The notes beneath the pieces are model-generated. The model made no database searches. It saw nothing but the letters and a program-made list of their open reading frames with translations, and was not told where the DNA came from. A stretch of 64,000 nucleotides of DNA from Hydrolagus colliei (Eukaryota), in the NCBI GenBank assembly GCA_035084275.1, contig CM068757.1, forward strand, positions 9,486,001 to 9,550,000, given 5' to 3'. The position numbers and the translations under genes were made by a program. Positions 21,751 through 64,000 of this stretch are shown in pieces. Within the stretch, counting starts at the first letter, position 1; the number at the start of each line of letters is the position of its first letter.

Positions 21751-22639
21751 TGTTGTTGTTGAATAATGTTTCCATTTGAAGCTGCGTCATGTCTTATCTC
21801 AAAGCATTTTTTGTACAACGAGTATAGTGTGCTGACTTGGGGAGTTGCTATCTGCACCAAAATGAGTGATCGAGTTTTTTTGGGGTGAATTCAGCTGAAT
21901 AATATTTTACAAAATCATCTTAAAATTGCATTCCCTTTCTCTCTCTCTCTCAATTTGTGCATGGTTCATTGTGGAAACAGTTTACATGTAGCACAAATAC
22001 AAGCTTGACTCAATGCCAAATGGCTCTGCCTCTGCTAGCAGCCTATCTACAAAGACTAAGCCCGAGCTGCATGATATCTACTATATACATGCACATTTGT
22101 TTTTTCTTTGCTGACTTTGATAAGGCTTTGGTGGATTCGTTAAACTCTTAAATTGCGGTGCATCTTGAATAATGTTGCAAAACAAAATTGCCCAGAGTAT
22201 TTAACTGAGTAAAGATTCTCTGAGCCACTTTTTCTGTTCTCATCTGCACATGGGTGCAGCTTCTTCAGGGATCACTGTACACTATAAACTAATGACGAAC
22301 AGGAAACTTCCTAATATTGTTACCCCCTACCCCTCCTTCTGCCTATGGATGTTGATGTCACTGCTTGGCTGAATTAATTGAGTCAAGTTCAGGGTTGGAA
22401 CTTGGGACTTTCCCAGAATAAGATCCATGCGAGGGAATTAGGCAGTGTCTCTATTAACAGATTTGTTGAAGAACTCAGTTGTATTCTCTCTGCGCTAACG
22501 GGAGAATCATTCACCGATATAATACATTCGGTACACTTTTGTTCTCCCAATTGTTCTCCCAATTGTCCAGCTGTTTAATGTTCATCTTTTACATATTTTA
22601 GCTGCAGAAATGGGAATTTGAATAATTTCTTCAACAACA

Positions 22640-34131: not shown

Positions 34132-36959
34132 CTCAGCCCCAGAAAGATGATGCCTCGTATATATTTCTGGTAAATAAACACAAGACAATTGTAACAGTAG
34201 AAAAGTGATAATCAGCCCAAGAGAAAATGCTCTCACTTTATTCTTAGGTCTCTTGTCCCAATCATACTCTCCGAATACGGGGGAGTCTTTGGAAGTGACA
34301 GAAAAGGATGTCTGCCCATATGGGAAGTGCATGACCTGTAAAAAACACTGCAAACTGGTCAAGAAGGAAACTAAGAATTACTACTCAAAACTGTTTTTTT
34401 CATTGAAAAATTGTGTACTACGTCCTCCCGACGTGAAAGGCGCTTTATAAGTTTAAGTTGTTGTTGTTGTTGTTGTACTATTCGAAATATCCTCTTTCAC
34501 TGTGAAATATCATCTTATAGGTAAACCTATTCTCTTATATGTGAAATATACATAAGCACTTTGTCTTATACAACAATAAGAACAACTAGCCAAAGTCTAC
34601 CACGGCACATCGCTTAGACTTCAGATATCCTCTTGTAAAGCATCTGGATATACTGTAATAAACAAGAAAAGCAACAAGTGAGGCTATGAACCTCAGAGCT
34701 CCCAACCACACAAAATATTAAATATATTTTAGAAATTTAGCATTTCACCCACAAAATACAGTCAGTTCACTTTACAATGTATTCTGTGAAATTCTTTGAG
34801 ATATCCTAATGACATAATAAGGCGCTATATCAAATACAAGGATTACATAGATTTTAAAGACTTCACCTAAAATTCTCTTCTCTTCTCCCACACCTTTTCT
34901 TCTGTGTTATTTCCCTCAAGCATACTCAGACACTGTGAATTAGATTTGAGTTGCTCCCCGATCTCCTATTTGGTAACTCTGCAGTTGAAACTCTTGACAC
35001 TGCAAGCACTTTTATCAGGTGACTCTTGTTGTTGAAATACTATTTAAATCAGTGACTAAACATTTACTCAGAATGTTGCCTAACTAGAGCCTGTTAGCCA
35101 ATACCTATTACTTTTCTTTAAAATGTGGCCTGTAAACATATTGACGCAGTAAAACAGTTTTTGTGATTTGACACAGGCTATTCTGTCAGTGGCAATCATG
35201 TACACAATTAAAATTTTAGTGCAGTCATGATCTGGGCAAAAAGGTTTTTTAAAAAGCAAAATATTCCACAGGATTTACTGTAGAATGTAGTAACTATTTG
35301 TAGGTGATCACAACAGCCAATTTGCACACTGTAATGTCTCACAAACCACCAATTAGTGACTGACCGATTTTATCTGGAGGCTTGTTGGTCAGGACAACAG
35401 GAAAAACTCCTTTCTTTCTTCAGGTACTGCTACAGGCACTTTAATGTCCACCTGAACAGGCAGACGGGACCTTAGTTTAATATCTCAGGCAAAGAACGGT
35501 CCAGTAACCCCCGCACTGCAACTTTAAAAAAAGAGAGCTGCAGTTCTGCCTTTGCAATATATTGCTTTGAAGTGAAGTTAAAGATAGCAACCATTTACTA
35601 GGGTTTTGGATTCTTCCAGCTGAGCTCCTGTGTGAAAACGGCTGAGCTAATAATTCATTGACTACCGATCTGTAAACAGCCGTTAGATATCTTGTCAACA
35701 GGTCAGGATCCCTAGTTACTTTCAAGGTTGCCCTCATAGGTCATACTTTATAGCAGTAAAATTTGTGACACTTCCCACACTTCTCAACCACATATTTGTA
35801 ACACAATGGATTAATGTGTAATCGTGTGTCAGCCTAACTCGGCGATGGCCTACATTCACACTGATTTAACAGTGTATCAGTTAAAGTACTTTGAGATATC
35901 CTCCCGCCATGAACGGCACTCTATGAATAATTTTTTTAACCAGCTATTTTTTTTTACCAATATGAATGTAATTTGTTTTCATTTGATTCAACTAAATATT
36001 TCATTGTAGATAATTATAACAATACTTTTTTTTATAGCGCCTTTCATGTCGGGAGGACACCTGAAAGCCTCATAGGATAAATGTACTATAAAGTGATGGG
36101 GGAAATAATGAATGCACAACCAATGTGCATAACAGTTCCTGCTTTACTGATAATTCAGCCCCAAAGAACAACCTTCGTTATCTGAATCCTGCAACCAATG
36201 GTCAGGTTGAATGCTCCACAGTAATTTCCACTCTGAACTGAGCACATGTCAAAGAATCCACACTCAGCGGGTAAACAGAGTAGCTCTCTCCCACAGAAGC
36301 TTCTCTTATTTTTAGGCACGTGACATGCCCTGTGTCTTTGAACATGGAGGTCAGTGAAACACAGTTTGCTTAATGTTCCATCGTCCAAAATTGTCATCTC
36401 CCATATGAAGTTTGTTTGGAAAAGTTTCATTTCCAAATATAGGTTGAAACTACAGTACTGTATTTAGAATGACCGAAGGAATGCCCCAAACATACAAGTG
36501 CCTAAAATGTTTTGAATCCGAATAAGCAACCAAACCTATGCCAGTCCCATAGCTCTGTCCATTACTCTATATTCAGATAACTTACAGTTCCCTTCAAACT
36601 ATGTATTCAGAATGCCTTTGTTTTCTGTCAGTCTGCTTACCAGTGCCCAATTCTGGTGAATGCTTATCTTGCAGTGGCTGAATTTGTAACAGACCGAAGT
36701 GGAAAACACATTTAGAAGGCTCTTTGTGAGAATGTGTGTGACTTGGGGAGGGATTGGGAGAGTTGGATGGTTCTCAACACTGATATATTGTTCCCTCATT
36801 CAGCACATTCTTGTGCTTCATTTTGATGCTTTATTCTCAAGACTCAATCTGCTTTGAACACAAACCAGAATTCTTTCCTCCGGCATTTTCCGGAAACAGG
36901 AACCCAATTCACTCTGTCTCCCTCTTTCCCTGGCATCCTTTTTATTAGTAATAAGTGAA

Positions 36960-38687: not shown

Positions 38688-39263
38688 CTTTCGGCCTCTC
38701 CTGAAACCCACCCATGATTTATTACATTGGAGTCAATTGAATGGGAATACAGGTTTTTTATGTCTCTGGGAAGCAAGAAGAACTTCTTGCAGATCTCCAT
38801 TGTTCTGAGTACCTACAAGAACAACAACAACAGCAGCAGCAAAATTACATTTGTATAGCCTGTTTCACGTTGGGAGGACGTCCCAAGGCGCTGGAGGAAT
38901 CAAATGAAAAAATTATAAAATAAGCAACACTGTGAAATCATCTGTGGATCTTTAAACCCAAACTTTTTTTTTTCCGTTTTAGAATCAGATTTGTCAATTT
39001 TCTTTTGCAATGGCTACACAGCAGCTACTTTATAAAGGAGGAAAGTGACTTCACAGTGACATGTAACAACACAGTAAAGCCGATGGAGGGTGACAATGAA
39101 TGGTACCCACGTTTTGTTGTTCAAACCCAGTGTTCTTGAGGTACACAAATCCAATGCCCGTGAAAGCCCTTATAATCTCAGAGCTCAACCGTTGCATTTC
39201 ATTGGCCGAGGGCTCGGCTTTGCCGAAGCCAAACGAGCCAAAGTCAATCACAGCAATGTTCAT
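38688..39263 (-). CDS. Second copy of dioxygenase coding exons 1 and 2 (alternative 5' cassette or truncated paralog)
   Basis: 39263-39111 (153 nt, MNIAVIDFGSFGFGKAEP...) and 38812-38688 (125 nt, VLRTMEICKKFFLLP...NHGWVSGEAE). Same exon lengths and phases as 34131-33979 and 33259-33135, with intact splice sites. No own exons 3-7 were found between 34400 and 38680. Confidence 0.8.
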
Positions 39264-39669
39264 CTCAGCCCAAGGATGATGGCGCCCTGCACAGATTTCT
39301 AGTAAATAAACACGAACAAAACAGTTATTATCACGGAAAAGGCACAGAAGAGACTGCCACATTGACTCACTGTGTAACCAGTAAAAAAAACAAATGGGTG
39401 GGGGGCGGGTGGAGGGTGGAATCGTTGTCCACGACTCAGGCAACAGGAAGAATCCATATACAGTAATAGGCAGAATAAAGGAGGCAGTCACTTCCGTGCA
39501 TGTGTGCTGTAGTGAGCTGCTAAGGCGATGCTGTGGGAATAGGTATAAGTCGGAAGGTGTTGGGGAAAGACCAGCATCCCAGACCAGGGCGGGGGAGGTG
39601 GGAGGGGGGTCTCAAAGGACATCAGTACCAGGATCCACTGGAGAGAGGGAGAGGGCGAGAGATAACGCA
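39264..39669. promoter_or_regulatory. Candidate bidirectional promoter (dioxygenase upstream cassette / B7-H6-like gene 1)
   Basis: Divergent ATGs about 406 nt apart; Ets-like CACTTCCG (~39490) and CGGAAG (~39551); GC-box-like ggggcgggg. Confidence 0.5.
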
Positions 39670-42600
39670 ATGTGGCTGTTTGTCCTGACAGCCTGTGTCC
39701 TCTCCTCAGGTGAGATACTATTCCGAGTTCAGCATTTCGATCGAGTTACACCCGCCGGCGCGAGACGCCTTCTCCACAATCCGGAAACTTCTGCGTTTTA
39801 TTTTTTAAAGAGAAGAGAGAGAAAAAAAACCTCAGAGAAAAAAAATGCAAATGTAATATCGTTTGAAACTGAATTTGTATTGATTCAAACGGGGGGCAAT
39901 AAACAGCGGGTGGTTCAATGTGTTTCTGGCTGCCAGAGACCTTTGTTCCCGATCCCTATCTCTCTCTCTCTATCTCTCCACCTGAACTTTGTTCTGTTTT
40001 TAACGATCGACTTTTGCAATGATTCTGTTTGATCGACTGTTGCAATGATTAATAGTTCTATTATATATACTGTTTGCAATGACTCTGGGTTCCACTGTGT
40101 TCAGTGTCCAGTCGCCCTTGGGATGACCTCCCAAAGTCAAACGCGCTGCACGAATATGATTTGGTTGTTATTGTTGTTCAAGTCACTAAACTTTACAGTA
40201 AAATGCAGTGATGTGTATCTGTGTTCCTTGGAGCTGAACCGGTTCTGAGGTGCCAAGCTTGACTAGCAAGTCGCAATCCTGTGTGTCAGTCTCAGCGGTT
40301 CAGTTCCTGAGCCAAACTTTGAGCGAAAGGCAGCGTCCAACAAACAGTACTGGATTGAAAAAAAAATGTTGACCAATTTTTTTTTCAGGGATTATTATTA
40401 GGCATGTGGAGTTAAGGTAAACTTGCCCAAGGTTTCGCCCTGCCTGGAAATGAACCCAGGTTTCTCGCTGGTAAAGGCGTGCGCTCTAACCACTGAGCTC
40501 CAGGACTCCACCAATAGCCTTGAGTGTGAAGTGTGTAAATAAGAGTGTAGATAAGCTTGGGTTTGGTTTTGTAATGACACACAAAAAAACAGCTTTATAT
40601 GAAGCTGGAAACTACTGAGAGTTCACTGTTCTCTGAATGCTGTTTGGTTGTGTATGAATGCGGGTGGCGTGCGGAGATCGAACAAATTCTTTGCCTTGTA
40701 GGTGATTTCTCTTGGCTGAATCATTAATGTGACTCAAACCACTACAAGTGCAAACACAACTTCTGCCAATAATAGCAAAAGTCCTTTGATTTGGTATAAC
40801 ACCTTCTTAAACCTAACTCTTCACTGACCGCATTTTCTGATGAACCGCGTAGCATAAAGTGCCCCAGGTCTGAGGTGTATTTTGCTAATGTAATAAGAGA
40901 ACTATTTTTGGACCCTGGGCAGACAAACAACAATGTTTTACTTGTGCTTCTGGTTTACACTTATGTGCATCAGAATAAATCACATTAATGAGGGTTTCTG
41001 TAATGGTTGAAATAATTAGTATTATTCACTCACAAAACACACATTCATATGATATATTAGTTTTTATTATTAATAATCATGGAATGAATGCAGGTGAGGA
41101 TGTGGAATTTGGGATGAGCTGCAGCTTGTTGACTTGCATGAATTATACATGTTGTGGCCAAGGTGAGTTGTATTTCATGTAATCTGGCACGAAGAGAAAG
41201 ATCTGATTAAATAGTTCTATTATATATATTGTAGAACCTCCTGAGCAACACCATAACTAGTTGTTACAGGATTACATGTTTGTTGTGGGTAGGAATCTAT
41301 TCCCTCCCCCTGTGTAGTATAGTTTCATGTTACCTGTAGAGTTGTATCGTCACTTCAGTTGATAGTACTCTGGCTTGGATCAAAGACCTTGAGTTCGCAG
41401 TCCAGCTGACACTCCAATGAAGTCCTGAGGAGTACAGAATTGTTGGAAGCACCATCCTTCAAATGCAATGTCAACCCAATGCACCTATGAAGGTGGATGC
41501 TAAACATCCAGGTGGACATTGAAGTACTACAGTAAAACTTGCGTAAAGTCTTATCTTTTTAAAATTATATAATTGCCCAAGTTGTAGTTCCACTGAGCCC
41601 CATTCGGTTTCCTATTAAAATCACTTAGATTTATTTACAATAATCATGTAGCTCAGTGGTTAGAGCACTTGCCTTACGAGCGTGAGACCTGTGTTCGAAT
41701 CCAGACTGGTCAGGCCAAACCTTGGGCAAGCTTCCTTACTCCACACGCCTAATAATAATCCCTCCAAAGAAAACACAATAATAAAATTGGTCACTTCAAT
41801 CCATGACTGTTTGTGGGACACTGCTGTGCGCAATTGGCTGCCGCGTTTCACCCACAAATATACAGTCGATTCGCTTTACAGAAAATTCTGTGAAGCGATT
41901 TGAGACGCTGATAAGATGTGAAAAGCGCTATGTCAAATGCAAGGATTATTATTATAATTATCATTATTATTAACTATCTCCTAACTGGTAATACTGCTCT
42001 CCTAACCATTACTCCCAGCACTTATTGACTGCACATTGAATCGTGGGAAACATAATCTCGACCTGTCACCACATGCACATTTACCAGTTGCATCAAATTA
42101 CGCATGTGCAGTATAGCTTATGTATTAAATGTGATTTTATATGCTTTACATAGTCTGCAACTCAGACTTCGCGTTAATCATATTCAATGTTAAAGTCCCG
42201 ACTGATATCATTTCTGTTATTTTTAATTAAAAAAAGACACTCTCCCAGAGTCCTGCAAGATTCATTCTTTTTTTGAACAGTAGCATAAGATTGTTCGCGT
42301 CTACTTGAACAGGAACAGAATTTGTGAAATCTATTATCTATTGATAATGCAATAATTATGCGAATATAACTGTTTTTTCCTCCCTTGTTTTGCTGAAGAT
42401 GCTTTCGAGTTGTCTATCTTTAAGAGCCCGTTGGAAGTCTTACAGCATGAAAATGCCCTCCTGGGGTGTAAGATAACCGGCTACAGAAACGAGTCTGAGA
42501 TCGATCCAAGCAATGTCACCGTTCGGTGGTTCTTTGGGCCTGAAGGGAACAGAAAAGAAGTGTTTTCCTTCCATGGGGACAGCTACATTACAGCACGTCC

Positions 42601-45600
42601 TGGAGCCATGATGTCTGAGGGTGCTTTACGGAGAGGAGACGCTTCAATGCATCTCCCGAACGTTAAATTGGATGAAGCAGGAGAGTACACGTGTGTTGTC
42701 CTTTTGGATTCCCGTAAAAAAGAAAGGAGTTCGCGGATGCACGTGTGGGGTAAGAATCAGGGATATTATTTCTCACTATATTGATGCATGCAATATATTT
42801 GAAGCTCTTTGAGATCCCTAGAAGACGTGAAAAACGCAAGAATTATTATTATGCAATTCCGACTAACACTGGATAGTTGGGAAGGATTGAGGGAAGCATT
42901 GATGTGCATGTATACAGTATGAGATCCTGTTGACATTTATACCCTGCGTTTGGTTGCAAAGAAATGGGAGAACCAATGAGAGCTAGCAGAGAAACAGAGA
43001 GCTTCAAAAGTTATCAGGAAGATGGCAGAATAAATGGTGCAGCAGTAAGTATGGATCTTGTGCACATCACTAAAACCTTAAAGTACAATATTGATCTCCC
43101 ACCTGAGGTCTTGTTGGAGGCATGGGTTCTTGGATGAGTATGTATGTGCAAGCCTAGGTATGTGAATGTGGGTGGGTGCCAAGGTGATCTACACAGGAGA
43201 TGAAGGGATGGCATGTTGAAGTTCCTATGTAATCCTGGCTCTATCCTGCGACTGTTTTTACGGGGCTTTTCTATTTATGTTGTGAACAGCTAGACCAAGC
43301 ATCCATTTGTCACCTCTTCACATCTCCGTGGTGTCAGGCAAGGAAGCCTCTGTGCAATGCAACGTGAGTGGATTCTACCTGAGTGGCATTGACATTAGCT
43401 GGGTGGAAGTCTCCCAGGGGAAGAGCAGATCTCTCGTGGAGGGTGTCTGCAGAACAGCTCTAGTTAACAGTAGCGATGGCACGTTTACAACCTACAGCCT
43501 GCTGAAGGTCACACCTACACAGGGGGACGATGGGAATAAATACAGATGTATAGTGAGGTATAAGGCACTTCACCATGATTTCACATTGGAAGCCAGCCTC
43601 CATGTCGAAGGTACGTTCAGTGCTATGAGTTCCACAGGAGCTGTTAATTCAACATAAGCTTGTTGAACCGTGGAGGCAGAGGTGCCTGTGTCAGTGCTGT
43701 GTCACTCAGATCTCCATGACATTAGCCAGACTCAGCTGGTAGCGAACAAGAGCACAAAATTGGTTCAGATGAAGAAGGCCCTTTGGCCCATCCATGCTCA
43801 TCTCTTCAGAATGCCCTCCCATCAAAACATTAAGCTTTTTCTTAAATGAATCCTGTGTTCTGGCCTTAACCACCCTTCCTGGCAACCTGTTCCAGTCATT
43901 AATTATTTCTGAGTGAAGAAACAAATTTTGGTGTTATTCCTGAAATTGCCTTTTGGAAATCTAACCCCATGTCCTGCTGTACTAGTGCCTTGGTACATCC
44001 AAACGTATTGTTCTGGGTTTACTTTTTCAATCCCATTTAAAATGTTGCATAAGATATGTTTCTTGTCTCTGGGTCAAAATTGCCTCCAAAAAAACAGTCA
44101 CTTCACTTGCCAAGGCCCCCTGTAAAGTGGTTTGTGAGGTTCCGATAAGTAAGGAGCCATATTAATGGTTTGGGTAATCTTGGTTTGGGAGGACAGAAAA
44201 AGCTTTTCCATTGGAAGGTAATGTGGTACAAAATATTACTCACCTACGTGTTCTAAAACGGTATTATGTATTGTTTTCTGTGTTTACAAGCTGCACTGAT
44301 ATTTACACTTTCTTGTTTGATTATAGAACCACATCTAACCCCACCGGTGACTGCAATCCTCGGAATTATATTCGGCGTGCTCCTGTTTTGTATGATTTGT
44401 TTGTCTTTTGGCTTTTGTATTCACCTGAAATCATCAGGCAATGGTAAGGAGAGATCATTTTTGCTCACAATTTTCATTTCCTTGCTAACTGCTTGTTACA
44501 GGGTTGATCAATCACATCCTCTCGACAAGGGATGCCAAACCAGACAGATAAGTGCTTCATTGTCAGAGATTCCTTTCTGTGGATGAGACATTAATCCAAG
44601 CTCCTGTTAACCAGTTCAGGTTGATTTAAAAAAAACATCCCAGAGAATGAAGTCTCTCTGTGTGTCCTAGCTGCCAATCCACCAGATATGAGCCCATTCT
44701 GTTCTGCCTGATTGTGAGGCTTTGCTCTGCCTGAATTGGCTACTCCATTTGCCAACAAGTATAGTCACAACACTTTACATGAAAGACTCTGGGAAACACT
44801 TTGAGACATTTTGTTGTTGGAGGCATTGTATAAAACGTAATGATTATGATTATTATCACAACTCAAGTACAACCTTTTAAATTTATGTCCCTTGTCCTGC
44901 TTTCCTGACTTAATCTGGTCCTATATATACTTACATTGAACTCTTGTAACCCTCACATCGCTAAGGGTTATGTTTTATTTGCACACAAACATAGAACAAA
45001 TGTTGAGACTTAGACATTCAGAGGCCTTCTATTCTTGTTTCCAGATGTTTGTCTAAAGGCTAAAATGATCATAGCCCATCCTTATGCACACCTGGAAGAG
45101 GGTAATCCAGATTACTCTAGTTCTAAATACAGACCAAATCAGTCATCTGTGGTGAGGGTGCTCAAGACGGGTTGCAGGCCATTAAGGCACATACTTCATT
45201 GCTGCAGTGAAGATTCTACGCCTCGGAGAAGTGTGCCAGCAGCATCTGATGAAGTTATGATTCCTCTCCGAAGCAAACTAGAGTATTCCTGTAGTGTGGA
45301 TGTGTCCCAATGTAAAGGTAATCCCATCTCCTCCATTGCCTTTGATTCTCTTGTTTTCCAGTGTTCTGCACTGTTGAATAGGCAAATATGCTGCTGTCTC
45401 ATTCGAGGCCTAAATTTCCACCAGGCCTTAGCCTGAAATATCATTAAAAATTCATACTTGTGTGGATGTATGCAAACATTTTAAATCTAGTCTCAATTTG
45501 GCAGTTGTCTTTCCTAAATTCTTTTTTTTTAAAAAAAGTACAGTATTCAAATAAAGAGTTCTGTGTATTTCTATATGATTTTAAATTTGAAGACAAAATA

Positions 45601-47789
45601 GTTCTTACATTATTCCAGTTGGCCTGCTTGGCTGGACTACATGACAGCAGTTCAGAGCAATTTAGCCTGATAAATCATCCTCACTCAGTTTTGTAATTTT
45701 GAAGAGGGGAAGATAGATTTGTAGGAAGATTGAATGTAAATGGATCAGATTGTTCTTTGTGATTTTTTTTTCTGGAGTATAGAGAGCTACCAGCTGCTTG
45801 TAACCTTGTGCGGAGTATATTGGTCATATTTTTAACACTCAATCAATTTTGTTTCCCGAAGTTGCACCCAAGATACCGGAGATTATTGTGCCTCCTCAAG
45901 TCTTTCATCAAGAGCAAACGACTTTGACCTGTCTGGTAAACGAGTTCAAGCCAAGACCATTAGGTATCACGTGGTACCAGGTTGGGCGAGATGGTGCAAG
46001 GCTCGAGATTGCGCAGGTTGATCACCAGAGCAGAGTTGTGGTTGCCGACAACCCAAAGGCACAGAGCGCCAAATACGCTCACAACATCAGCGAGTTTATG
46101 CATGCGGATAACTCGTATATTGTCACCAGTGTGCTCATGCTCACACCGGCTGTGCAAGAAGATGATGGAACAGCTTACATCTGCAAAGTGGAACATGTTG
46201 CTACCGGTTTGGTCATGGAGAGAGCGATTGTGCTGGGCGTTAAAGGTACGAGGGAACAGTGATGCACTGATGTGTGTTGTAAACTGCCACTGGGGAAGAT
46301 ATTAATGGTGATTTAAAAAATGATCCGTTATTTTCACAAGTAGCAAAAATTCTAGTCAGTGGCAGATCTGATGAACTTTGCTGGATATTTGCTTGGCTCA
46401 GTGGTAGCATTCTTGCCTCTGAGTAAGATGGTTATGGGTTCAAATCCCAAATGAGGATTTGGAATCATATAGTCTAAGATGACACTCCAATCGGTGGTGG
46501 GAATGTGTTTCATTGACGGAGATGCTGCCTTTCAGATGAGACATTAAACCGAGGAGCCGTCTGCCTGTTCAGGTGGTTGTTAAAGATCCTATGCGCTATT
46601 TGTAAACAGAAAGGAGTTTCTTCTGGTGTCCTAGTCAACAATCCCCCAAAGAAAATCGGTCACTCGTTTCAGCACTCATTCGTGAGTGCGTGGAGCTCCT
46701 GTGGCTTAGTGGTTAGAGCACTTGTCTTGCAAGCTGGGGAGACCAAGCTGAGGAGACCTGTGTTCGAATCCAGGCAGGTCAGGGCGAAACCTTGGGCAAG
46801 TTTCTTACTCCACACGAATAATAATAATCCCTCCCAAAAAAACACAATAATAAAATTGGTCATTTCAATCCACGACTGTGTGTGGGACACTGCTGTGCGC
46901 AAATTGGCTGCCGCGATTTGCCCACAAATATATACAGTCAATTCACTTTACAGTATATTCTGTGAAGCGCTTTGGGACGTTGATAAGATGTGGAAAGCGC
47001 TATATCAAATGCAAGGATTATCATATATGATTATATATTATATTATTCATAGCCATTTGTGGACCATTACTTTCCTCTTGATATGAACCATTGTATTTAA
47101 GTTCCTAAATTTTGGGTATCACAGCTCAGGGAGAATATGTCATATTTGGAGGATGACCAGCATTGATTGACTAAATTACTGCCAAGGATGAAAGGACCAA
47201 GTGGATGGGTGGTTGTGTGTGTGTATATGTGGATGGATGGGTGAGTGCATGTGTGGATATGTCAGATCAGTCAGTCAGCCAGTCCTGGCAGAATAGACCC
47301 ACCAAATGGGCTAAATAATAAATCGCATACTTGGCATAGGGCATTTTGTGTCAGGAGGGCGCCCCAAAGTGCTTCAAAGGATACACTGTAAAGTGTAGTA
47401 ACTGCATGTTTTGTGCATTGAATGGCCTCCTCCTGTTCCTGATTAACTACAGTGGTGTTTGAAATTGTTTTTCATTCTTAGCCACTCCGAAATTGGATGC
47501 GATCTGGAAAGCATCAGGGCTGGCGATCACCAAGGAGGAACTTGTACTGAACTGCAGAATCCACTCCTTTTCCCCAAACGCTATTGGCGTTGTGTGGTGC
47601 AAGGATGGGGAGGAATTGCCCGAGAGCGTGGAGCTCAGTGATCCCATTTGTGGGAAGGATGGCCTGTATTGCTGCTTGAGCACGTTGAGATTAATGCCCA
47701 TCAAAAATGCTTTTGCCAGCACGTACACGTGCAGAGTTTACCACGAAAGTCTGGCTCAGCCCAAAGAGATGGAGTGGATCCTAGATTGA
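39670..47789 (+). CDS. NCR3LG1: B7-H6 (NCR3LG1)-like gene 1: SP-IgV-IgC1-TM followed by post-TM IgC1-like domains
   Basis: Exons 39670-39709 (signal peptide MWLFVLTACVLSS), 42399-42749 (IgV with the B7-H6-like VFSFHGD..RPGA..GDASMHLP..EAGEYTC), 43290-43610 (C1), 44327-44443 (TM), probable 45045-45317, 45862-46245 (C1), 47482-47789 (C1, TGA). All introns phase 1. About 597 aa with the probable exon. The symbol denotes family likeness, not proven orthology. Confidence 0.8.
41643..41972 (+). mobile_element. tRNA-headed SINE, same family
   Basis: gtagctcagtggttagagcacttgcc head through aaggattattatt tail. Confidence 0.85.
43700..44050 (-). mobile_element. CR1 3' fragment
   Basis: WNRLPGRVVKA..DSFKKKL motif typical of the CR1 ORF2 C-terminus. 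Confidence 0.7.
45045..45317 (+). CDS. Probable post-TM exon of B7-H6-like gene 1 (degenerate Ig-like segment)
   Basis: Polypyrimidine tract + CCAG acceptor and AAAG|GTAATC donor; 273 nt, phase 1-1, open. Contains VCLKAKMIIAHP (resembles VAPKIPEIIVPP) and YSCSV. Confidence 0.5.
45862..46245 (+). CDS. Gene 1 post-TM Ig C1-like domain A (Cys/Trp/Cys retained)
   Basis: TLTCLVNEFKPRPLGITWYQ...YICKVEH; CCGAAG acceptor, AAAG|GTACGA donor, phase 1-1. Confidence 0.85.
46383..46670 (+). mobile_element. Deu-domain SINE (AmnSINE1/SacSINE1-like)
   Basis: ggctcagtggtagc head and Deu core gatgagacattaaaccgagg..ctgcctgttcaggtgg..aaagatcc. Confidence 0.7.
46691..47035 (+). mobile_element. tRNA-headed SINE nested in an older Deu-domain SINE
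   Basis: Same family head and tail; follows directly on the Deu-SINE body at 46383-46670. Confidence 0.8.
47482..47789 (+). CDS. Gene 1 terminal post-TM Ig C1 domain B with stop codon
   Basis: LVLNCRIHSFSPNAIGVVWCKDG...YTCRVYHESLAQP-WILD*; TTCTTAG acceptor. Confidence 0.85.
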
Positions 47790-48551
47790 TTGGGTACGTG
47801 AAACAAATAACAACATTGGTGTGTTCAAGTCCACACTGATGCGTAATCTCACATGAGGCACCTCATCTAATCCCAGTCTTTTATTTACGTTCCGAACCCT
47901 TTAATCTTCCTCTCGATAAAATTGATCATCCACTTTATAGCTATTTGGAGGACTTTGCTTGTGTACATTAGCTACTGTGTTTGGTTATAAATACATAATC
48001 ACTACACTTTAGGTAATATCCTATGGTTATATCCTTTGAGTCATCTTCCTGATGTGAAAGGCCCTCGATCAAATTCAAGAATAATTATTATTTATACCGA
48101 TTACAGTCACTATGCAGAAAGCTCTGGGAGTGCATTTCGTTGCCTTTGGCATTGTTGTAATGCAAATAACTTTTTTTTATCTGTAGTCAAACCTGTTTAA
48201 GCAGCCGACTCTATTCAGCAACCACCGCTGTCAACAACCATACTGTAACAGCCTGGATATACATTCTACATGCAGCCATAATAATAATGTTTGCATGTGA
48301 TATAATGCTTTACTGCATTTTGTCTTTGAGATGTCTCAAAGTGAATTGAGATGAACCCTTACCCAGTCGCCAACAACTTGCATTTACATACTGCCCTCCA
48401 TGCCGGCGGTGTCTCAGAGTGCTTCAGAATGGCGGAGCCTAAGACTTATTTTAAGCTATTTGTTTTTTTTGACCTGCAGATTCATACAGTGAAAGTTCAA
48501 GAATTAGCACGGACTAATCCAGTGAGGGAGCAGGATCAAGAACTCAACAAC

Positions 48552-48925
48552 AACAACAACAAATTACACTTATAAAGCGCCTTTCACGTCGGGAGGACGT
48601 CCCAAGGCACTGCACAGGAGGCGTGTGACCCGAGCTGGGAGGGGAGTGTTCGGGGAGGGGTGAAACACGTAGGGGAGGTTGAAAAATTCTGGGTGGAACA
48701 AAAGGCACGGTCGAAGAGGAAAGTCTTCAAACCGGCCTTGAAAGAGGAAAGGGAAGAAACGAGACGGAGGGATTGAGGGATGGAATTCCACAAGGTGGGA
48801 GCGGAAAAACTGAAGGCCCGGCCTCCGATAGTGGGGCGGTTCGGGCGGGGGGCTTGGAGCAGGCTAAGTCCTGCTGAACGGAGGGTCCGGGTGGGCTTGT
48901 AGGGGGAGAGTAGATTGGTTAAGTA
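48552..48925 (-). mobile_element. Young L2 3' end fragment
   Basis: [30 protein letters not shown], closely matching 31160-31400. Confidence 0.85.
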
Positions 48926-50411
48926 GGGCGGGGCAATGGACTGAATGGGCTACTCTTGGCTCCTTGGTTCCAATGGGTTGCAGTTTTCTAGTTTTCTCTT
49001 TCATCTGTCTTGGAATTTTCCAGCACTTGCTTTCTGGGTGGGTAAAGGAAACTCAATGGGTAGTTTTTGTTACACAGAGAACAATCAACAGCTCTTCTGG
49101 GCCACCAGGAACGGTGGTTAAAGCTGGGATACGGAACTCCTTTAAGAAGTGGGTCTGCTTTGGGATGGGAAGATGATAGTATTTGTTTTCTGGAAAGTTG
49201 TGATCAAATGGTCAGATATTCTCTATTCAAACTTCTTTTCATTTTAAATAGGGAGCTTTGGGGGAAACATAGTTGCAATTGTTACATTTTCAAAGTTCAC
49301 TGTATATACTAATTGACTCAAGATGAGTTTTCTCAGGGGAAAGAGTTGTACATTTTTGGAATGCAAAACATCAGTTTCCATTCACATCTTTTATTTCTTG
49401 TAAATGGTGTGATTTTCTCCACATTCCATAAACAATTCCACCTAAATAACTTTGTTATCGGTCTTAAGAGTTCTAAATATTGGATAGCTAAGAACTAACA
49501 TTCTATGATCTGTATTTTACTTTGTACTCTGAATAAACACCACATGCCTTCAGCTATTACCCCACCAAGGGTCTGGAACTCCCTTCCTCACTCCCTTTGC
49601 CTTGCCTCCTCTTTTCCTACTTTCATGTCTCGGCTAAAGACCTTTCTTTTCGATCACGCTTTTGGTCACCTTCTTTCCCCTCCCCCTGGCTCGGCTATAA
49701 CAATAACGGATCCCCCTGGATCCGTTATTGTGGAGCGCTCTGAAACGCTGTCCGGCATGGAGGGCACAATATAAATTCAAGTTGGTGTTGTTGAACTGTA
49801 CATTGTAAATTTAATACAGATGTGGCGCTTATTTCCAGACCACTGTGAATTTTTTTTATTCCAGGTACATTACTGATTTAGTTCAGTCTCTTGTAATTCA
49901 GGTGAAGATAAAGGGATTGAATAGATCAACTTAAAGGTCCTGCTCTTAAATATAAATCCGTTCTTGCCCTGACACATTCTTTGCCCTCTGATCTGCTCCT
50001 TCTCCACTCCCCCGCCATACACCATACTTTAATTCACTACTCCCCCTAATGTTTGGAATTCCCTGCCGCCATACTTCTGTCTTGCCCCCAAACTAAATTC
50101 CACCTTAAAACCTATCTGCAACTCTGCTGCAGTTCATAGCATTTTTTCCCTCACAATCTTTGCAGTTTTAGGCTTGCATTCTAGGCTGGGACTCCAGTGC
50201 AGTGGTGGTGGGGTTGCAGCACTTTCAGAGGTGATGTCTTTGGAGTAAATATTAAACTTGGGTCCCATCTGAGACAGGCAGGAAGGACCAAAGTTTTACA
50301 TCTTATCTAGGGATGGGAGCTCATCTAAAGGAGAGATGAAAGCCATCCAAAGCCAGATGTACTTCAGAACCACAAAGTGACCTTGCTGTCATAAAAGAAC
50401 AAAGGGAATGA

Positions 50412-50620
50412 CGACAACAACAACAACAACAAATTACATTTATAGAGCGCCTTTCACGTCGGGAAGACGTCCCAAGGCGCTGCACAGGAGGCGTGTGACC
50501 CGAACTGGGAGGGGAGTGTTTGGGAAGGGGTGAAACACGAAGGGGAGGTCGGAAAATATGGGGTGGAACAAAAGGCACGGTCGAAGAGGAAAGTCTTCAA
50601 ACCGGCCTTGAAAGAGGAAA
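50412..50620 (-). mobile_element. Young L2 3' end fragment
   Basis: [20 protein letters not shown] plus (AAC)n tail. Confidence 0.85.
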
Positions 50621-51567
50621 TGACAAACGTGCCATTCACTCAGTGGGGTCCTTCGGGATAGCGGCTCGTACATATTGTAATCATTCAGGTTAACGGATCA
50701 TTCAGGTCATGTTCCTGAGTCTCGGGATTTTCCTGGTACAAATGTTTGCTGCCTTTGACTACAATAACAGCTCATCAAAGATCTCGAAAAGAGAAGGGAG
50801 TTTCTCCCGATCTACTGAACAACAAAATAAATATTTTGGGTGATTTGTTTCACGGCTGTGTGTGGGACATCACTGTGTGCAATTGAGTTGCCATGGCGGC
50901 CTACTTCATAGTAAATCCTGTGACGTCTCTGGAGACAATCTGCAGACGTGATAAGATGCTATGGAGCACTGTAACATATTGGTTAGAACACTCACCCCTC
51001 CCGTGAGGACCTGGGTTTGATTCCTGAGCTGGGCAAAACATTAGGCGAATTTCCTCCCTTCACACGGCTCTGTTTATCCAGCAGTAAGAAGGAACCCAGT
51101 TGCTGGTTGATCAGCGGATTGCTTATTTGGGCGTAATATTCCCCTAAAACGAAATGTGTTCACTCAATCCGTGAATGTTTGTGGGACACTCCGGTGCGCA
51201 ATTGGCTGTTGCGTTTCGCCTGCAAAATATACAGTCGATTCACTGAACAGTGTAAGCGCTCGGAGACGCCGCGCGGCCTGGAGGGCGCTCTGCAGATCAA
51301 AGTTGTTGTTGTTGTAGTCTGCGCAGTGCTTTCAGACATGTCAAAGAGGTGATAGGCTGCTAATATCAAATACAACGATCATTGAATGCATCAAATGCAA
51401 GTATTTTACTTTAACAATCACACAATTAGTCAAGATGACCCGTGAGACGTTATTGGTCCCTTTCCCCAGCCCTCCTGACTTCCCAGAAATGAGGATAACT
51501 CGGGATCCGTGTTCGCAGTTTAAAGCTAATCTGCTGTGAACACAATGATAGCGTTAAACACCATCCC

Positions 51568-51604
51568 TTTCCGAGAAATCATACACGAGAGTGAAAGTGA
51601 AAGC
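51568..51604 (+). promoter_or_regulatory. GAS site plus IRF-E/ISRE upstream of B7-H6-like gene 2
   Basis: TTTCCGAGAAA (51568-51578, TTCN3GAA) and GAGTGAAAGTGAAAGC (51589-51604), about 60-125 nt 5' of the two candidate ATGs. Confidence 0.65.
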
Positions 51605-51691
51605 ACAGCCCCAGTCAGTTCGGCTGGAAGCTGGAGAGAGAGACAGACACAGAGAGAGACAGACATGTTGAGGGGGACAAACTCGGCTATA

Positions 51692-54600
51692 ATGTCCTCA
51701 CCCGGTGGAGCTGCCAGGGCGCTGACCCTCGTCCTGATCCTCGGGGCTTGGATTGCAGGATCAGGTACAGAAAATGCGCAAACGTTAGACTGATTTGCTG
51801 CTGGATCCCACCGCTGAGCGAGACACAGAGACACACCGCTAACTGGAGGCTGCCCTGGGGGAGGGGGGGGGGGCACAGCCTGAAGGGTCTGTGTTTGGGG
51901 TTTAGCTGATAAACAGTGACCGCCGCCCAGCGCATCAATCAGTGAGTGGCCCCTTTTCGGGGGTCTCTCCATTCTCTCCCCACAGTGGGGTTTACTCCCC
52001 CCCCCCCCCCCCCCCCCCGTTATTTCAGGGGCCACCAGCACAAACAGGAAGCGTTTTGGAGCTGGGGCAAGGAACAGACATTTTGTGATCGCAGTTTCAA
52101 ATTTGCTCTATCAGCAGTTGGCTACCAGGTTAACATGGAGGGGAAATCGGGTGGGGTTTTTAACTCAAAGTTCAAGAGAGCTCTCTGCAGCCTGTGTAAA
52201 TTGGGTTGTTGTGATGGATACTGTATAACATGAAGTTTATGTGTTAAGCACCGGGGCAGGTGCATTGGAAAGATTGAAGAGCCCAACCCTGTGAAACGCC
52301 TCCCAGTTTGAGAGAAACTTACATAAGAATTAGGAGCAGGAGTGAGCCATTTGGCCCCTCAAGCCTGCCCTGCCATAACTCTAATTAACTGCCCGATCCC
52401 CATATCCCCTAATCCCTCTAGTTTAAAAAAATCTATCAGTCTCAGCCTTAAAAATGTTCGAGGACTGAGAATCTATACCCTCTGAGTGAAGAAATGTTTC
52501 TAAAAGGCTGATTCATAATTTTAACACTATGACCCCTCTGGTTATAGATTCTCCTACCAGGGGAAACAGTCCCTCATTGTCTACTTTATCCAGCCCTTTA
52601 AGAATCTTATAAGTTTCAATAAGATCTCCCCTAATTCTTCTGTACACTAATATGCCGTTCGCCTTCTTAGTTGCTTGATGTACCTGCAAACTAACTTTTT
52701 GTGACTGATGTACAAGGACACCCAAATCCCTCTGAACACTAACACTGTCTATTCTCTCCCCTTCTAGAAAATAATCTGTTTTTCTATTTTTGCTACCTAG
52801 GTGAATAACTTCACACTTCCCCACATTAAATTCCATCTGCCACCTATTTGCCCACTCCCCTAGTCTATCTATATCCTGTTGCAATCTTTTTGCATCATCC
52901 TTAGAGTTTACTCTCCCACCTAGTTTAGTGTCATCCGCAAATTTAGATACGTTACATTCAATGTCCTCGTCTAGATCATTGATGTAAATTGTAAATAGCT
53001 GAGGCCCAAGCACTGATCCTGGTGGCACTCCACTAGTCACATCCTGCCAATTCAAGAATGACCCATTTATCCCTTCTCTCTGTTTTCTACCCGTTAGCCA
53101 CTCTTTCAATCCATGATAATATGCTCCCATTAATCCCGTGGGCCTTAACCTTGCGCAATAGCCTTTTATGTGGCACTTTGTGAAATGCCTTCTTAAAATC
53201 TAAATATACTACATCTGCTGGTTCTCTCCTATCTAACCTGCTAGATATATCCTCAAAAAAACTCTTAACAGATTAGTTAAGCATGACTTCCCTTTTGTAA
53301 AGCCATATTGACTCAGCCTAATCTTGTTATGGTCTTCCAGGTATCCCATAACGACATCTTTAATTAAGGATTCAAGAATTTTCCCTGTCACTGATGTCAG
53401 AATAACTGGTCTATAATTCCCCATCTTTTCTCTCCCACCCTTCTTAGATAGTGGAGTTATGTTTGCAATCTTCCAATCACTGGGAACCATTCCAGAATCC
53501 AGAGAATTTGGGAAGATCAAAGACAAACCACCCACTATTTCAGTAGCCACCTCTTTTAAAAACCCTAGGATGCAGGCCATCGGGTCCGGGGGATTTATCA
53601 GTTCTTAGACCTGACAATTTACCTAAAACCAATTCTTTACTAATATTAATTTCCCTAAGTTGCTTGCTAACATTGTGTTCTTGGTTCCCCTCTATTCTTG
53701 GTAGGCTTTCGGTGTCTTCTAAGGTGAAGACAGTAGCAAAGTACTTGTTTAATGACTCTGCCATGTCTATGTCCCCTATTACAATTCCCCATGTCTCTAC
53801 CTGTACGGACCCACATTTACCTTTGATAGCTTCTTCCTCTTTATACATTTGTAAAACCTCTTGCAGTCTGTCTTTATATTCCTTGGTAGTTTGCCTTCAT
53901 ATTTCATTTTCTCCCCTTAATCACTTTTTTGGTTCTCCTTTGTTGATCCCTAAAGCTATCCCAATCCTCGGGTTTACTACTCATCTTAGCTGTTTTATAG
54001 GTTGCTTCTTTTAACTTGATAATTTCCCTAACTGCTCTAGTTAGCCATGGCTGGACCACCCGTGGCATTCTTATTCCTCAAAGGAATATGTGCTCACTGG
54101 GAATTTTGCATTATCTCTTTAAGCGTCTGCCATTGTTGATCTACTGTCAAATCCTTAAGTCTAATGTCCCAGTCTATTTTAGCTAAATCATCTCTCAAAT
54201 TTTTCACTCTCTCAGCTGCCACCCAGAGGCCAATTGTTAGTGTGTCCTGGGGCAGTCATGTAAACTTGTACAAGGTGAGGAAAGTCACATGGCAGCCAAG
54301 AAAATAGTGAAAATAACCAATTAAGCATTTATCAACAACAAATTACAATTGTATAAAACCTTTAATGTGGGGAGGATATCACAAAGCACTGGGCAAACAG
54401 GATTTCGACCAAAGTAGGGGTTGGGATCAGTACAACAACAACAATAAAAGTACATTTATAGAGCACCTTTCACGTAGGGTGGACTTCCCAAGGCGCTGAA
54501 CCATCAGATCGGGACCCGAGTAAGGGGGGAAGGGTCAGGGTAGGGGTAAGGGGACAAAGAGTAGCAAAGAGAAGAGAATTAGGAGGGCAGCAGAAGGCAC

Positions 54601-63600: not shown

Positions 63601-64000
63601 ATTGCGAAGCTAATCAAGACGTTACCCTGCATGAAAGTTGCTATGTTAAATGGAAGTTGCTATTGTTGAAAGAGTGTGTAACTCTGTCTGAAACCTTGCT
63701 GCAGATTTACATTGTAAACTGTGTGTGAGGCTGTGTGGTGTGTCCTGTAACTGGATTTAATCTTTACATGATATTTGTGTTTGTGTTATAGCTCCTCCCA
63801 TAATTACTGAATGGCCGGCAACCCCTGATATGACACATGGTGACACCTCCACTCTGAGTTGGGCAGTGACACGGTTCAATCCACGTCCCATTGTAATTGT
63901 TGTATTACTGAAGAGAAAAGGGGAGTCGAGATCAAATAAGCTGTTTTATTGGCAGACAGAGAAAGAACAACCAGCAGGAAATAACATTCCTGTTATCCGT
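51692..64000 (+). CDS. NCR3LG1: B7-H6 (NCR3LG1)-like gene 2: SP-IgV-IgC1-TM-(atypical IgC1-like)x>=3; runs off the window end
   Basis: Exons 51692-51764 (signal peptide; an upstream in-frame ATG at 51665), 56537-56872 (IgV, GDASLHLP..DEGYYTC), 59557-59994 (C1 + TM + KK), 60429-60851, 62500-62907, 63792->64000. All phase 1, AG/GT-bounded, open. The symbol denotes family likeness. Confidence 0.82.
52320..54190 (-). mobile_element. 5'-truncated CR1 LINE (RT) in intron 1 of gene 2
   Basis: GNYRPVILTS, GFTKGKSCLTNL, SGVPPGSVLGPQLF and KFADDTKLGG across ORFs 53540-53848, 53233-53580 and 52513-53130. Confidence 0.9.
54440..55610 (-). mobile_element. Degraded L2 LINE 3' part
   Basis: [22 protein letters not shown] and L2 tail; similar to the 29570-31410 copy. 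Confidence 0.85.
55770..56240 (-). mobile_element. Older L2 3' fragment
   Basis: [17 protein letters not shown]-type sequence on the minus strand. Confidence 0.7.
57079..57365 (+). mobile_element. tRNA-headed SINE, same family
   Basis: ggagtcctgtagctcagtgg head and aaggatta tail. Confidence 0.8.
58380..58960 (+). mobile_element. Degraded CR1 3' fragments
   Basis: CR1 C-terminal-like sequence (tgtggaactctctgcc, atgggccaaatggcc); boundaries approximate. Confidence 0.55.
60429..60851 (+). CDS. Gene 2 post-TM atypical Ig C1-like domain 1 (no canonical Cys)
   Basis: APPKI...RSWEVTGFKPKEIEIMILL...ITMQVHHKALKQPLKKSVTLYVE; 423 nt. Confidence 0.85.
62186..62480 (+). mobile_element. tRNA-headed SINE ending about 20 nt upstream of the 62500 exon
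   Basis: ggagtcctgtagctcagtggttagagc head and aaggattattatt tail. Confidence 0.85.
62500..62907 (+). CDS. Gene 2 post-TM atypical Ig C1-like domain 2
   Basis: VPPTM...LTWEVNGFNPRAIVIAVLV...FTVEVKHQALDNPLTKAITLCVA; 408 nt. Confidence 0.85.
63792..64000 (+). CDS. Gene 2 post-TM atypical Ig C1-like domain 3 (partial, too short for the ORF track)
   Basis: TTATAG acceptor, then APPIITEWPATPDMTHGDTSTLSWAVTRFNPRPIVIVVLLKRKGESRSNKLFYWQTEKEQP..., open to the window end. Confidence 0.85.

Follow-up and report, generated by a model that had tools for sequence, protein, structure and literature searches.

A probable shortened copy of long-form NCR3LG1/B7-H6 in Hydrolagus colliei with C1-set Ig exons behind the transmembrane exon

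Introduction

C1-set immunoglobulin (Ig) domains are a hallmark of jawed-vertebrate adaptive immunity (Ig, TCR, MHC, beta2-microglobulin (beta2m) and tapasin) and, to our knowledge, are known only extracellularly or in the ER lumen. The human NK-cell ligand B7-H6, encoded by NCR3LG1 and bound by the NK receptor NKp30 (NCR3), has a V–C1 ectodomain, one transmembrane segment (TM) after the C1 domain, a non-Ig tail described as gag-like and a nucleobindin gene as neighbor; human NUCB2, NCR3LG1 and KCNJ11 are adjacent. A human NUCB2 SNP that is a cis-eQTL for NUCB2, NCR3LG1 and KCNJ11 likewise indicates that the three are neighbors (PMC7071772).

Here, a gene located at ~39.67–47.79 kb on the + strand of a 64,000-nucleotide window of the Hydrolagus colliei genome (gene 1) was compared with B7-H6 and its relatives. 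Gene 1 shares the V–C1 ectodomain, the single TM after C1 and the nucleobindin neighbor with human B7-H6 but, like the long-form family described below, carries C1-derived Ig domains 3′ of the TM. A post-TM Ig tail was not described in the literature searched; the key papers on B7H6 evolution lay outside that search. Gene 1 is probably a divergent, shortened copy of an ancestral long-form NCR3LG1/B7-H6.

Results

Each of the seven gene 1 exons has an open frame, is in the correct phase and is bounded by good splice sites. The features are as follows (a slash marks the exon–intron boundary):

39670–39709, + strand: candidate leader exon, MWLFVLTACVLSS plus 1 base; donor CAG/gtgaga, phase 1
42399–42749, + strand: V-set exon (D1), B7-H6-like; Pfam V-set E 5e-10, tblastn matches to family members
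43290–43610, + strand: ectodomain C1-set exon (D2); Pfam C1-set E 1.4e-12, in the D2 clade of the domain tree
44327–44443, + strand: TM exon, 117 nt, phase 1-1, no stop; reads EPHLTPPVTAILGIIFGVLLFCMICLSFGFCIHLKSSGN
45045–45317, + strand: D3 relic exon, 273 nt = 91 codons, phase 1-1, in frame
45862–46245, + strand: D4 exon, long C1-set Ig domain, 384 nt, phase 1-1; Pfam C1-set E 6e-11
47482–47789, + strand: D5 exon, C1-set Ig domain; Pfam C1-set E 4.8e-15, TGA at 47787–47789
47790–47799, + strand: ancestral phase-1 donor, now an unused relic (TTG G/GTACGT), two codons past the stop, GT at 47794–95

The candidate leader was found by scanning for an ATG, a hydrophobic core and a phase-1 donor. 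The same scan recovered the leader of the neighboring gene 2 (51692–51764), and this sequence agrees with the P0178 leader from a Callorhinchus relative. The best PDB sequence matches of the V–C1 region are chains of human B7-H6/NCR3LG1 (3pv6, 4zso and 6yjp), with E 6e-29 over both domains, and the ectodomain is presumably a ligand of an NKp30-type receptor. Family-conserved columns are kept below the level of typical members in both the V exon (8/11) and the C1 exon (15/19), and ectodomain motifs are changed, for example C-x-V-x-H to C-I-V-R-Y. Upstream of gene 1, at 5.6–14.1 kb on the + strand, lie nucleobindin exons (Pfam NUCB1_N score 52 bits, cut-off 27, E 9e-14), whose sole PDB match is nucleobindin 1.

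The earlier note on this DNA had reported that the TM exon ends in a phase-1 donor with no stop and is followed by two intact C1 exons with canonical Cys-Trp-Cys, and both parts hold. The TM exon (acceptor ...gattatag/AA, donor AATG/gtaagg) encodes the single hydrophobic window across gene 1. The D4 exon (acceptor cccgaag/TT, donor AAAG/gtacga) reads ...TLTCLVNEFKPRPLGITWYQ...YICKVEH..., with the triad Cys24-Trp38-Cys108, and the D5 exon (acceptor cattcttag/CC) reads ...LNCRIHSFSPNAIGVVWCK...YTCRVYHESLAQPKEMEWILD before the TGA, with the triad C153, W167 and C212 in the numbering of the two-domain pair. With 43 bits (D4) and 56 bits (D5), both exons pass the Pfam C1-set gathering cut-off of 21 bits. 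AlphaFold modeled the pair as two beta-sandwiches (mean pLDDT 94.3, pTM 0.85), and the structural neighbors of this model are two-Ig-domain chains, including one from PDB entry 6yjp, a complex of NKp30 with B7-H6 (TMq 0.65, TMt 0.70).

Together with the database matches below, the Pfam scores and the AlphaFold model place the D4 and D5 exons far above chance level. By tblastn, D4 shares 40–44% identity with its counterparts in coelacanth, chimaera and sharks (E to 4e-30), and its 128 codons equal the D4 exons of S. canicula and C. milii. Family-conserved columns are kept at 13/13 in D4 and 11/12 in D5, the Cys/Trp triads being invariant or nearly so in the alignment. Strict retention of both cysteines in each domain is unexpected for domains that always reside in the reducing cytosol.

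When the D4–D5 pair (230 aa) was used as a query, 723 database proteins matched at E<=1e-3, 55 of them with E<=1e-30. The best matches are proteins of ~1,100 aa from chimaera, sharks, rays, bichir, coelacanth, lungfish and frogs, named "uncharacterized" or "NCR3LG1", the latter being the RefSeq name of the frog long form. Their layout is signal peptide–V–C1–TM–D3...D9, i.e. seven Ig-like domains 3′ of the TM, with one mid-protein TM at about residue 230–350 in most members and several matches without a TM. Long forms such as Callorhinchus LOC103174895 (V9K7L7), Latimeria LOC102345720, Cetorhinus LOC144684898 and Bombina NCR3LG1 agree with gene 1 in exon order, phases and sizes (V, C1, TM, D4 and D5), although gene 1 is only 33–44% identical to any member. 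The exon structures of S. canicula and C. milii are identical. The family's separate symmetric TM exon between C1 and the tail domains (39 codons in S. canicula, 40 in C. milii) is present in gene 1, and this exon with its basic C-terminal flank is conserved from chimaera to coelacanth. UniProt V9K7L7, presumably mRNA-derived, contains V–C1–TM–D3...D9 in one sequence and differs from the genome-derived models at several residues. We found neither an annotated protein nor a close orthologue for gene 1; the sole match to its spliced model is 27% identical.

Judged from these models, post-TM Ig architecture is a conserved property of the whole gene family, and the downstream exons therefore most likely belong to gene 1. 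The claim of the earlier note that gene 1 shares with gene 2 a layout of Ig-like exons 3′ of the TM is supported. The long form is an old and apparently undescribed form of B7-H6 whose tail domains probably arose by C1 exon duplication.

Cysteine retention differs among the tail domains. D4 and D5 retain the canonical Cys-Trp-Cys in ~30–32 of 33 full-length relatives, and the triad is as conserved in D4, D5 and D9 as in the ectodomain. One canonical Cys is missing from each of D3, D6, D7 and D8, a loss conserved across classes; in D3 the F-strand Cys is absent from most of the 33. N-glycosylation sequon density (observed/expected) does not separate the tail (1.25) from the ectodomain (1.27). 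Two models lack the TM: Bombina bombina RefSeq NCR3LG1 isoform X2 differs from isoform X1 in lacking precisely the TM block of 34 aa, and Scyliorhinus torazame model P0011 joins C1 straight to D3.

Where the family has an intact, Cys-poor D3 directly after the TM, gene 1 has only the 91-codon relic. The end of this exon, which lies between the TM and D4 exons, maps to 45317; this end point, the V exon, the candidate leader exon and the unused D5 donor extend the earlier description. Its N-terminal two thirds are in register, and the E-F-G strand region is gone. A Pfam search of the exon gave no match, and a D3-profile hmmsearch against six frames matched the relic frame only (E 0.0013). In alignment A2, the relic retains both columns invariant in 26/26 rows (H16 and P31) at equal offset from the acceptor, as well as the DEV..PL stretch. 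This decayed exon is the gene 1 counterpart of the post-TM domains of gene 2 and, if spliced in, would probably serve as a linker.

At the 3′ end, relatives read W-V-L-D-(R/Q)-L and splice to D6, whereas gene 1 reads W-I-L-D-TGA-L-G/gt; with the old donor, the D5 exon would have an ancestral length of 312 nt, that of the S. canicula D5 exon. Gene 1 is without D6–D9, the acidic linker and the conserved C-terminus (...KLKLS), and remnants of D6–D9 were not found at E<0.1 in 47790–56500, the 8.7 kb ahead of gene 2. The three breaks relative to the family (D3 decay, stop before a retained donor and missing D6–D9) are also compatible with an incipient pseudogene. Poly(A) hexamers 3′ of the relic exon (at 45443 and at 45550) would permit a shorter transcript missing D4–D5; by our own estimate, their density is about that expected by chance. 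Open frames continue beyond the TM donor to a stop at 44584–44586 and beyond the relic donor to a stop at 45434–45436.

The earlier note had also suggested that gene 1 and gene 2 may be less and more derived stages in the movement of the same Ig domains toward the cytosol. The end-to-end alignment of exon 45862 with gene 2 exon 60430 (E 5e-8) is in line with that idea, as is the sister relationship of the D3 and D4 clades, which makes D3 a Cys-less relative of D4. The C1-domain phylogeny of both genes, a check the note had itself proposed, contradicts it: exons 45862 and 47482 fall in the D4 (support 100/97) and D5 (100/99) clades, and gene 2 exons 60430 and 62501 group as sister copies within the D3 clade. 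The Cys-less exons of gene 2 are tandem copies of D3, a triplication also found in a Callorhinchus relative; the F-strand Cys of D3 was lost long ago; and the domain positions, D3 and D4 included, separated before the cartilaginous/bony fish split. Both domain types also sit adjacent within single proteins of many species, and gene 1 carries its own decayed D3. We consider the two-stage scenario extremely improbable.

Discussion

The ancestral long form is a gene of ~1,100 codons conserved among cartilaginous fishes, bichirs, coelacanth, lungfish and frogs. In gene 1, D3 would have decayed to an in-frame relic, a TGA arisen before the old D5 donor and D6–D9 disappeared. If all exons are joined in one mRNA, the product would be a 597-aa type I membrane protein with a B7-H6-like V–C1 region outside and, behind the membrane, a linker and a pair of well-folded C1-set domains. 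Skipping of the TM exon would keep the frame and give a soluble form with four Ig domains. The present analysis establishes the exons with their phases, fold, homology and domain identity, as well as the family architecture and the nucleobindin neighbor; the joining of exons in one mRNA, the dominant isoform, the side of the membrane on which the tail lies and binding to a receptor are inferred.

A decaying or dead long-form duplicate, in which D4–D5 are simply uneroded so far and no functional protein is made, would equally have a D3 without its E-F-G strands, a TGA in place of the relatives' R or Q ahead of a surviving old donor, no trace of D6–D9 over the 8.7 kb that precede gene 2, altered ectodomain motifs, and neither a close homologue nor an annotation of its own. 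That a gene in this state would still have seven exons with intact frames, phases and splice sites is harder to explain, and a functional short form, too, would be expected to stop where a domain ends. D4 and D5 together keep 24/25 family-conserved columns and all Cys/Trp, which argues for continued constraint, and such uneven decay, with the D3 core lost in the same gene, implies selection on D4–D5 after D3 was relaxed. We regard decay as unlikely, and more improbable still is that gene 1 yields solely a conventional short-tailed V–C1–TM protein by read-through past the TM or relic exon, with D4–D5 unused or in another transcript. The open frames past both donors, the poly(A) hexamers after the relic exon and the Ig-free tail of human B7-H6 would fit such a product; the near-chance density of the hexamers and the conservation of D4–D5, in phase and in family order and spacing, speak against it. 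Neither a start codon nor a leader signal for a separate D4–D5 gene was seen.

A secreted form of gene 1 lacking the TM, the alternative offered by the earlier note, is plausible and has precedents in other species, and the main product might even skip the TM exon (43610 to 45045 or 45862), giving a soluble V–C1–(linker)–C1–C1 decoy or opsonin resembling B7-H6; as the main product we consider it somewhat unlikely. Secretion would account for the retained D4–D5 disulfide cysteines. Both the TM and the relic exons are symmetric, the Bombina isoform X2, S. torazame P0011 and several other family matches do without the TM, and D4, D5 and D9 hold Cys-Trp-Cys at ectodomain level. Against this, the TM is present in most models and in V9K7L7; in gene 2 it is fused to the C1 exon and so is not skippable as a cassette; D3, D6, D7 and D8 lack a canonical Cys across classes; conservation of the TM exon and its basic flank extends from chimaera to coelacanth; and sequon density is alike on the two sides. 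A shortened, divergent long-form copy remains our preferred account of gene 1.

In a wider sense, we tentatively propose that the ancestral vertebrate B7-H6 was two-faced, an NK-receptor ligand outside with a C1-derived Ig chain working in the cytosol behind a conserved TM, that TM-exon skipping could switch the chain to secretion, and that gene 1 is a minimal version with two tail domains. If true, C1-set domains would become known for the first time on the cytosolic face of a membrane protein, where they might serve as a scaffold or sensor. The post-TM C1 layout in a B7-family ligand, conserved from chimaeras to frogs, would mean either cytosolic C1 domains, a new setting for the fold, or a membrane/secreted switch through a mid-gene TM exon, and both readings revise the picture of ancestral B7-H6. 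Gene 1 itself has a narrower meaning, that of a natural deletion variant with D4–D5 under apparent constraint.

Among known systems, D5 aligns over its full length with beta2m and MHC-I alpha3 (PDB phmmer, ~34 bits) and has a similar terminal ...PKxxxW motif. In contrast to beta2m, D5 is encoded within a multi-domain gene, by an internal exon that has clear D5 orthologues in many species, and it does not represent a separate beta2m gene. IGSF1, like gene 1, has Ig domains before and after an internal hydrophobic segment, and topology can thus not be read from domain type alone. The IGSF1 linker restarts translocation, cleavage occurs co-translationally, and a further TM lies at the C-terminus. 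Gene 1 and most of its relatives have one hydrophobic window, without an IGSF1-type second segment and C-terminal TM; the single segment of gene 1, with its basic C-terminal flank and no later TM, makes a cytosolic tail the default reading. Ig heavy chains, shark UrIg/UrIg2 and SIRP, like gene 1, have strings of C1-set domains from phase 1-1 exons, and Ig chains, UrIg2 and SIRP-gamma are among the PDB sequence and fold matches of the gene 1 domains. Ig heavy chains also make membrane and secreted forms by alternative splicing. In those multi-C1 proteins, every C1 domain precedes the TM and is extracellular (PMC12227049), whereas the C1 tail of gene 1 follows it.

Ig exons behind the transmembrane segment of gene 1

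Downstream of its V and first C1 exons, the B7-H6-like gene 1 carries a transmembrane (TM) exon and further Ig-like exons. Domains are numbered as in long-form NCR3LG1/B7-H6, with D1 the V domain, D2 the ectodomain C1 and D3–D9 the Ig-like domains after the TM.

39670-39709, +, candidate leader exon
42399-42749, +, V exon (D1)
43290-43610, +, first C1 exon (D2)
44327-44443, +, TM exon (117 nt; good acceptor, GTAAGG donor, phase 1 at both ends)
45045-45317, +, D3 relic exon (273 nt, in phase)
45862-46245, +, D4 exon (384 nt; good splice sites, same phase as the TM exon)
47482-47789, +, D5 exon (good splice sites, same phase as the TM exon)
47790-47799, +, unused phase-1 donor G|GTACGT, well formed, two codons past the stop

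The earlier note had described a TM exon without a stop followed by intact C1 exons with Cys-Trp-Cys motifs, and this was confirmed by reading the sequence, ORF listing, Pfam and AlphaFold. The TM exon is stop-free and encodes a 25-residue hydrophobic stretch. Pfam called C1-set for both D4 (43 bits) and D5 (56 bits; cut-off 21). Modeled by AlphaFold from an alignment of 29 homologues, the D4–D5 pair formed two beta-sandwiches (pLDDT 94.3, pTM 0.85), and its structural neighbors were two-Ig-domain chains; among them are SIRP-gamma, light chains of antibodies and one chain from 6yjp, an entry for the NKp30/B7-H6 complex. The candidate leader is plausible; the leader scan used here also predicted the leader of gene 2, the second B7-H6-type gene downstream, which matches that of the Callorhinchus relative of gene 2. 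Frame and splice sites are intact in all seven gene 1 exons, and the spliced model encodes 597 aa (558 aa minus the TM exon; 506 aa minus the relic exon). Assignment of D5 to a beta2-microglobulin gene was rejected, as the exon is internal to the gene and has D5 orthologues elsewhere.

A conserved family with seven post-TM Ig-like domains

The D4–D5 peptide (230 aa) was searched against 1.84 billion representative proteins, giving 723 matches, 55 of them below 1e-30. The best were proteins of ~1,000–1,200 aa, matched over approximately residues 430–660. Members from Latimeria, Callorhinchus, Erpetoichthys, Protopterus, Pristis, Cetorhinus, Heterodontus, Amblyraja, Narcine and several frogs are named ‘uncharacterized protein’, and a Bombina member is named ‘natural cytotoxicity triggering receptor 3 ligand 1’. 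The family layout starts with a signal peptide followed by V and C1, continues with a lone hydrophobic segment that is basic on its C-terminal side, and ends with seven Ig-like domains (D3–D9) and a conserved C-terminus; most matches have just one hydrophobic segment in mid-protein, near residues 230–350. UniProt V9K7L7 (Callorhinchus), which belongs to an mRNA-derived accession series, contains the entire layout including the TM and differs at several residues from genome-derived models. In S. canicula and C. milii, each domain is encoded by one exon, with a separate TM exon of 39–40 codons and a D4 exon of 128 codons, the sizes found in gene 1. The proposal that gene 1 shares with gene 2 an architecture of Ig domains after the TM is right, and this architecture is conserved in relatives.

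The interest lies mainly in this family-wide architecture, which the exons of gene 1 expose; its members are already in databases as unnamed predictions. Full-text literature searches on Ig, IgSF or C1 domains inside the cell, and on shark and Xenopus B7H6, returned no description of Ig domains that follow the TM in genes of the B7-H6 type, and an earlier one may still exist. Two ‘uncharacterized’ Alligator proteins retrieved with gene 2 have V-V-C1-C1, a mid-protein TM and then more Ig-like domains, from which the theme may extend to amniotes/reptiles.

Domain identity of the gene 1 and gene 2 exons

Gene 2 runs off the end of the window and differs in exon arrangement.

56537-64000, +, gene 2
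59558-59995, +, C1 and TM in a single exon
60430-60853, 62501-62908 and 63793 onward, +, three tandem D3-type exons lacking the cysteines

Its closest relative, Callorhinchus LOC103175084 (629 aa, 68% identical), has the same triple D3, and a structure prediction for the gene 2 D3 still gave an Ig-like sandwich (pLDDT 88).

A maximum-likelihood tree was computed for 66 domains, taken from the window and eight species. Every position from D2 to D9 formed a supported clade spanning cartilaginous and bony fishes. The tail exons of the two genes fell into separate clades, with the 45862 exon in D4 (100/97), the 47482 exon in D5 (100/99) and the gene 2 exons at 60430 and 62501 as sisters within D3. 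Cysteine and tryptophan residues were tabulated for 33 full-length relatives, which are not independent, there being several per species. Cys-Trp-Cys is retained by D4 and D5 in 30–32 of the 33, while the F-strand Cys is missing from D3 in most, from D6 in all 33 and from D7 in 22, and D8 mostly lacks the B-strand Cys. Canonical cysteines are therefore what D4 and D5 normally have; those in the gene 1 exons do not represent a less derived form of the gene 2 domains, and the idea that the two genes capture two stages of moving one Ig domain into the cytosol does not hold. The D3 clade is sister to D4, and the two jointly are sister to D2, a topology suggesting that the tail domains arose by duplication of the C1 exon.

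Departures of gene 1 from the family

The exon at 45045-45317, which has no Pfam match, lies between the TM and D4, where D3 is expected, and within that interval a D3 profile matched only its frame. An alignment to 25 D3 domains shows that the two columns invariant in all rows (His16 and Pro31) are retained, at an unchanged distance from the acceptor, as is a DEV..PL stretch, and that ~50 residues spanning strands E–G are missing. The exon is a D3 relic that would serve as a linker at most. The second departure is at the end of D5, which in gene 1 reads W-I-L-D-TGA-L-G|gtacgt, compared to W-V-L-D-(R/Q)-L followed by a splice to D6 in relatives. A CGA to TGA change is a plausible route to this stop, and the unused donor at 47790-47799 is a trace of the ancestral D5–D6 junction. 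No D6–D9 remnant rose above noise in the 8.7 kb between the stop and gene 2 (tblastn, word size 2, E up to 10).

Such losses could also mark a decaying duplicate. Decay is, however, uneven between domains: family-conserved columns are kept at 13/13 in D4, 11/12 in D5, 8/11 in V and 15/19 in C1. This pattern argues that selection on D4–D5 persisted after D3 was released, and we accordingly rank a short functional variant above a pseudogene.

Locus and remaining features of the window

The match of the V and first C1 exons of gene 1 to human B7-H6/NCR3LG1 crystal-structure sequences spans both domains (E 6e-29). Exons lying upstream on the same strand have nucleobindin 1 as their sole PDB match. 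NUCB2, NCR3LG1 and KCNJ11 are adjacent in the human genome. The nucleobindin exons upstream of gene 1 and gene 2 reproduce the human NUCB2–NCR3LG1 neighborhood and, together with the B7-H6 match, place both genes as B7-H6-type genes at a conserved locus. A human NUCB2 SNP is a cis-eQTL for NUCB2, NCR3LG1 and KCNJ11 (PMC7071772). A search for a close orthologue or annotated protein of gene 1 gave a single match, 27% identical. The Callorhinchus long-form gene, a possible orthologue of gene 1, has the same exon layout and a B7H6-like neighbor, with identities to gene 1 of only 35–44%. On Callorhinchus MU249848.1, a V-like pseudo-exon (7720-8083) upstream and another V-C1 (B7-H6-like) gene (29602-33699) downstream flank the long-form gene, so the cluster is tandem there too.

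5604-14144, +, nucleobindin (NUCB-like) exons (Pfam NUCB1_N E 9e-14, plus an EF-hand piece)
9300-10400, ~1 kb GC-rich, strongly strand-skewed, low-complexity tract
33832-34362 and 39051-39491, -, two exon copies weakly resembling the N-terminal region of 2-oxoglutarate/Fe(II) dioxygenases (sub-threshold Pfam DIOX_N matches, E 5e-4 and 1.5e-3)
21016-21762 (+), 29570-31369 (+), 52513-53848 (-) and 54.5-56.3 kb, LINE-type reverse-transcriptase ORFs or fragments (RVT_1 E 2e-36 for a 599-aa ORF)
57081-57152 (+), with similar copies near 41680-41760, 46690-46790 and 62180-62260, SINE-like repeats of tRNA origin, intronic in both genes

The 39051-39491 exon ends ~180 bp from the candidate leader of gene 1 on the opposite strand, making a shared bidirectional promoter possible. 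An NCBIfam scan of neighboring ORFs was empty, as expected of a prokaryote-oriented library. LINE-type ORFs and fragments occupy much of the interval between the two genes. One SINE-like repeat was called tRNA-Ala by ARAGORN, and these families are common to the window and the Callorhinchus locus at ~80% identity. Given these shared repeats and the 68% identity of gene 2 to LOC103175084, the window probably derives from a chimaera or a near relative. The 9300-10400 tract is probably a simple repeat; its long ORFs are rich in proline/serine on one strand and in glycine/arginine on the other.

Location of the tail

The tail could belong to a membrane-bound protein and lie in the cytosol, be secreted, or do both through regulated use of the TM exon. 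The combination of a signal peptide and a single hydrophobic segment, flanked C-terminally by basic residues, is predictive of a type I protein whose tail lies in the cytosol. Consistent with this, D3, D6, D7 and D8 each lack one disulfide partner and the loss is conserved, the TM exon is itself conserved and, in gene 2, the TM is fused to the C1 exon. A tail that is always cytosolic, however, fits poorly with D4, D5 and D9, in which conservation of both cysteines matches that seen in the ectodomain, with a S. torazame model in which C1 is joined straight to D3, and with Bombina RefSeq isoform X2, which differs from isoform X1 only in lacking precisely the 34-aa TM block. The earlier suggestion that gene 1 may yield a TM-skipped form is reasonable, and the Bombina isoform sets a precedent. 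N-glycosylation sequon density (observed/expected 1.27 in the ectodomain and 1.25 in the tail, seven species) does not discriminate topology. The tyrosine motif YENI in the acidic linker was dropped as an indicator of cytosolic topology, since it is found only in two sharks and is absent from gene 1.

Ig domains flanking a hydrophobic linker can take an unexpected topology, as in IGSF1. Unlike the proteins described here, IGSF1 has a second hydrophobic segment and a C-terminal TM.
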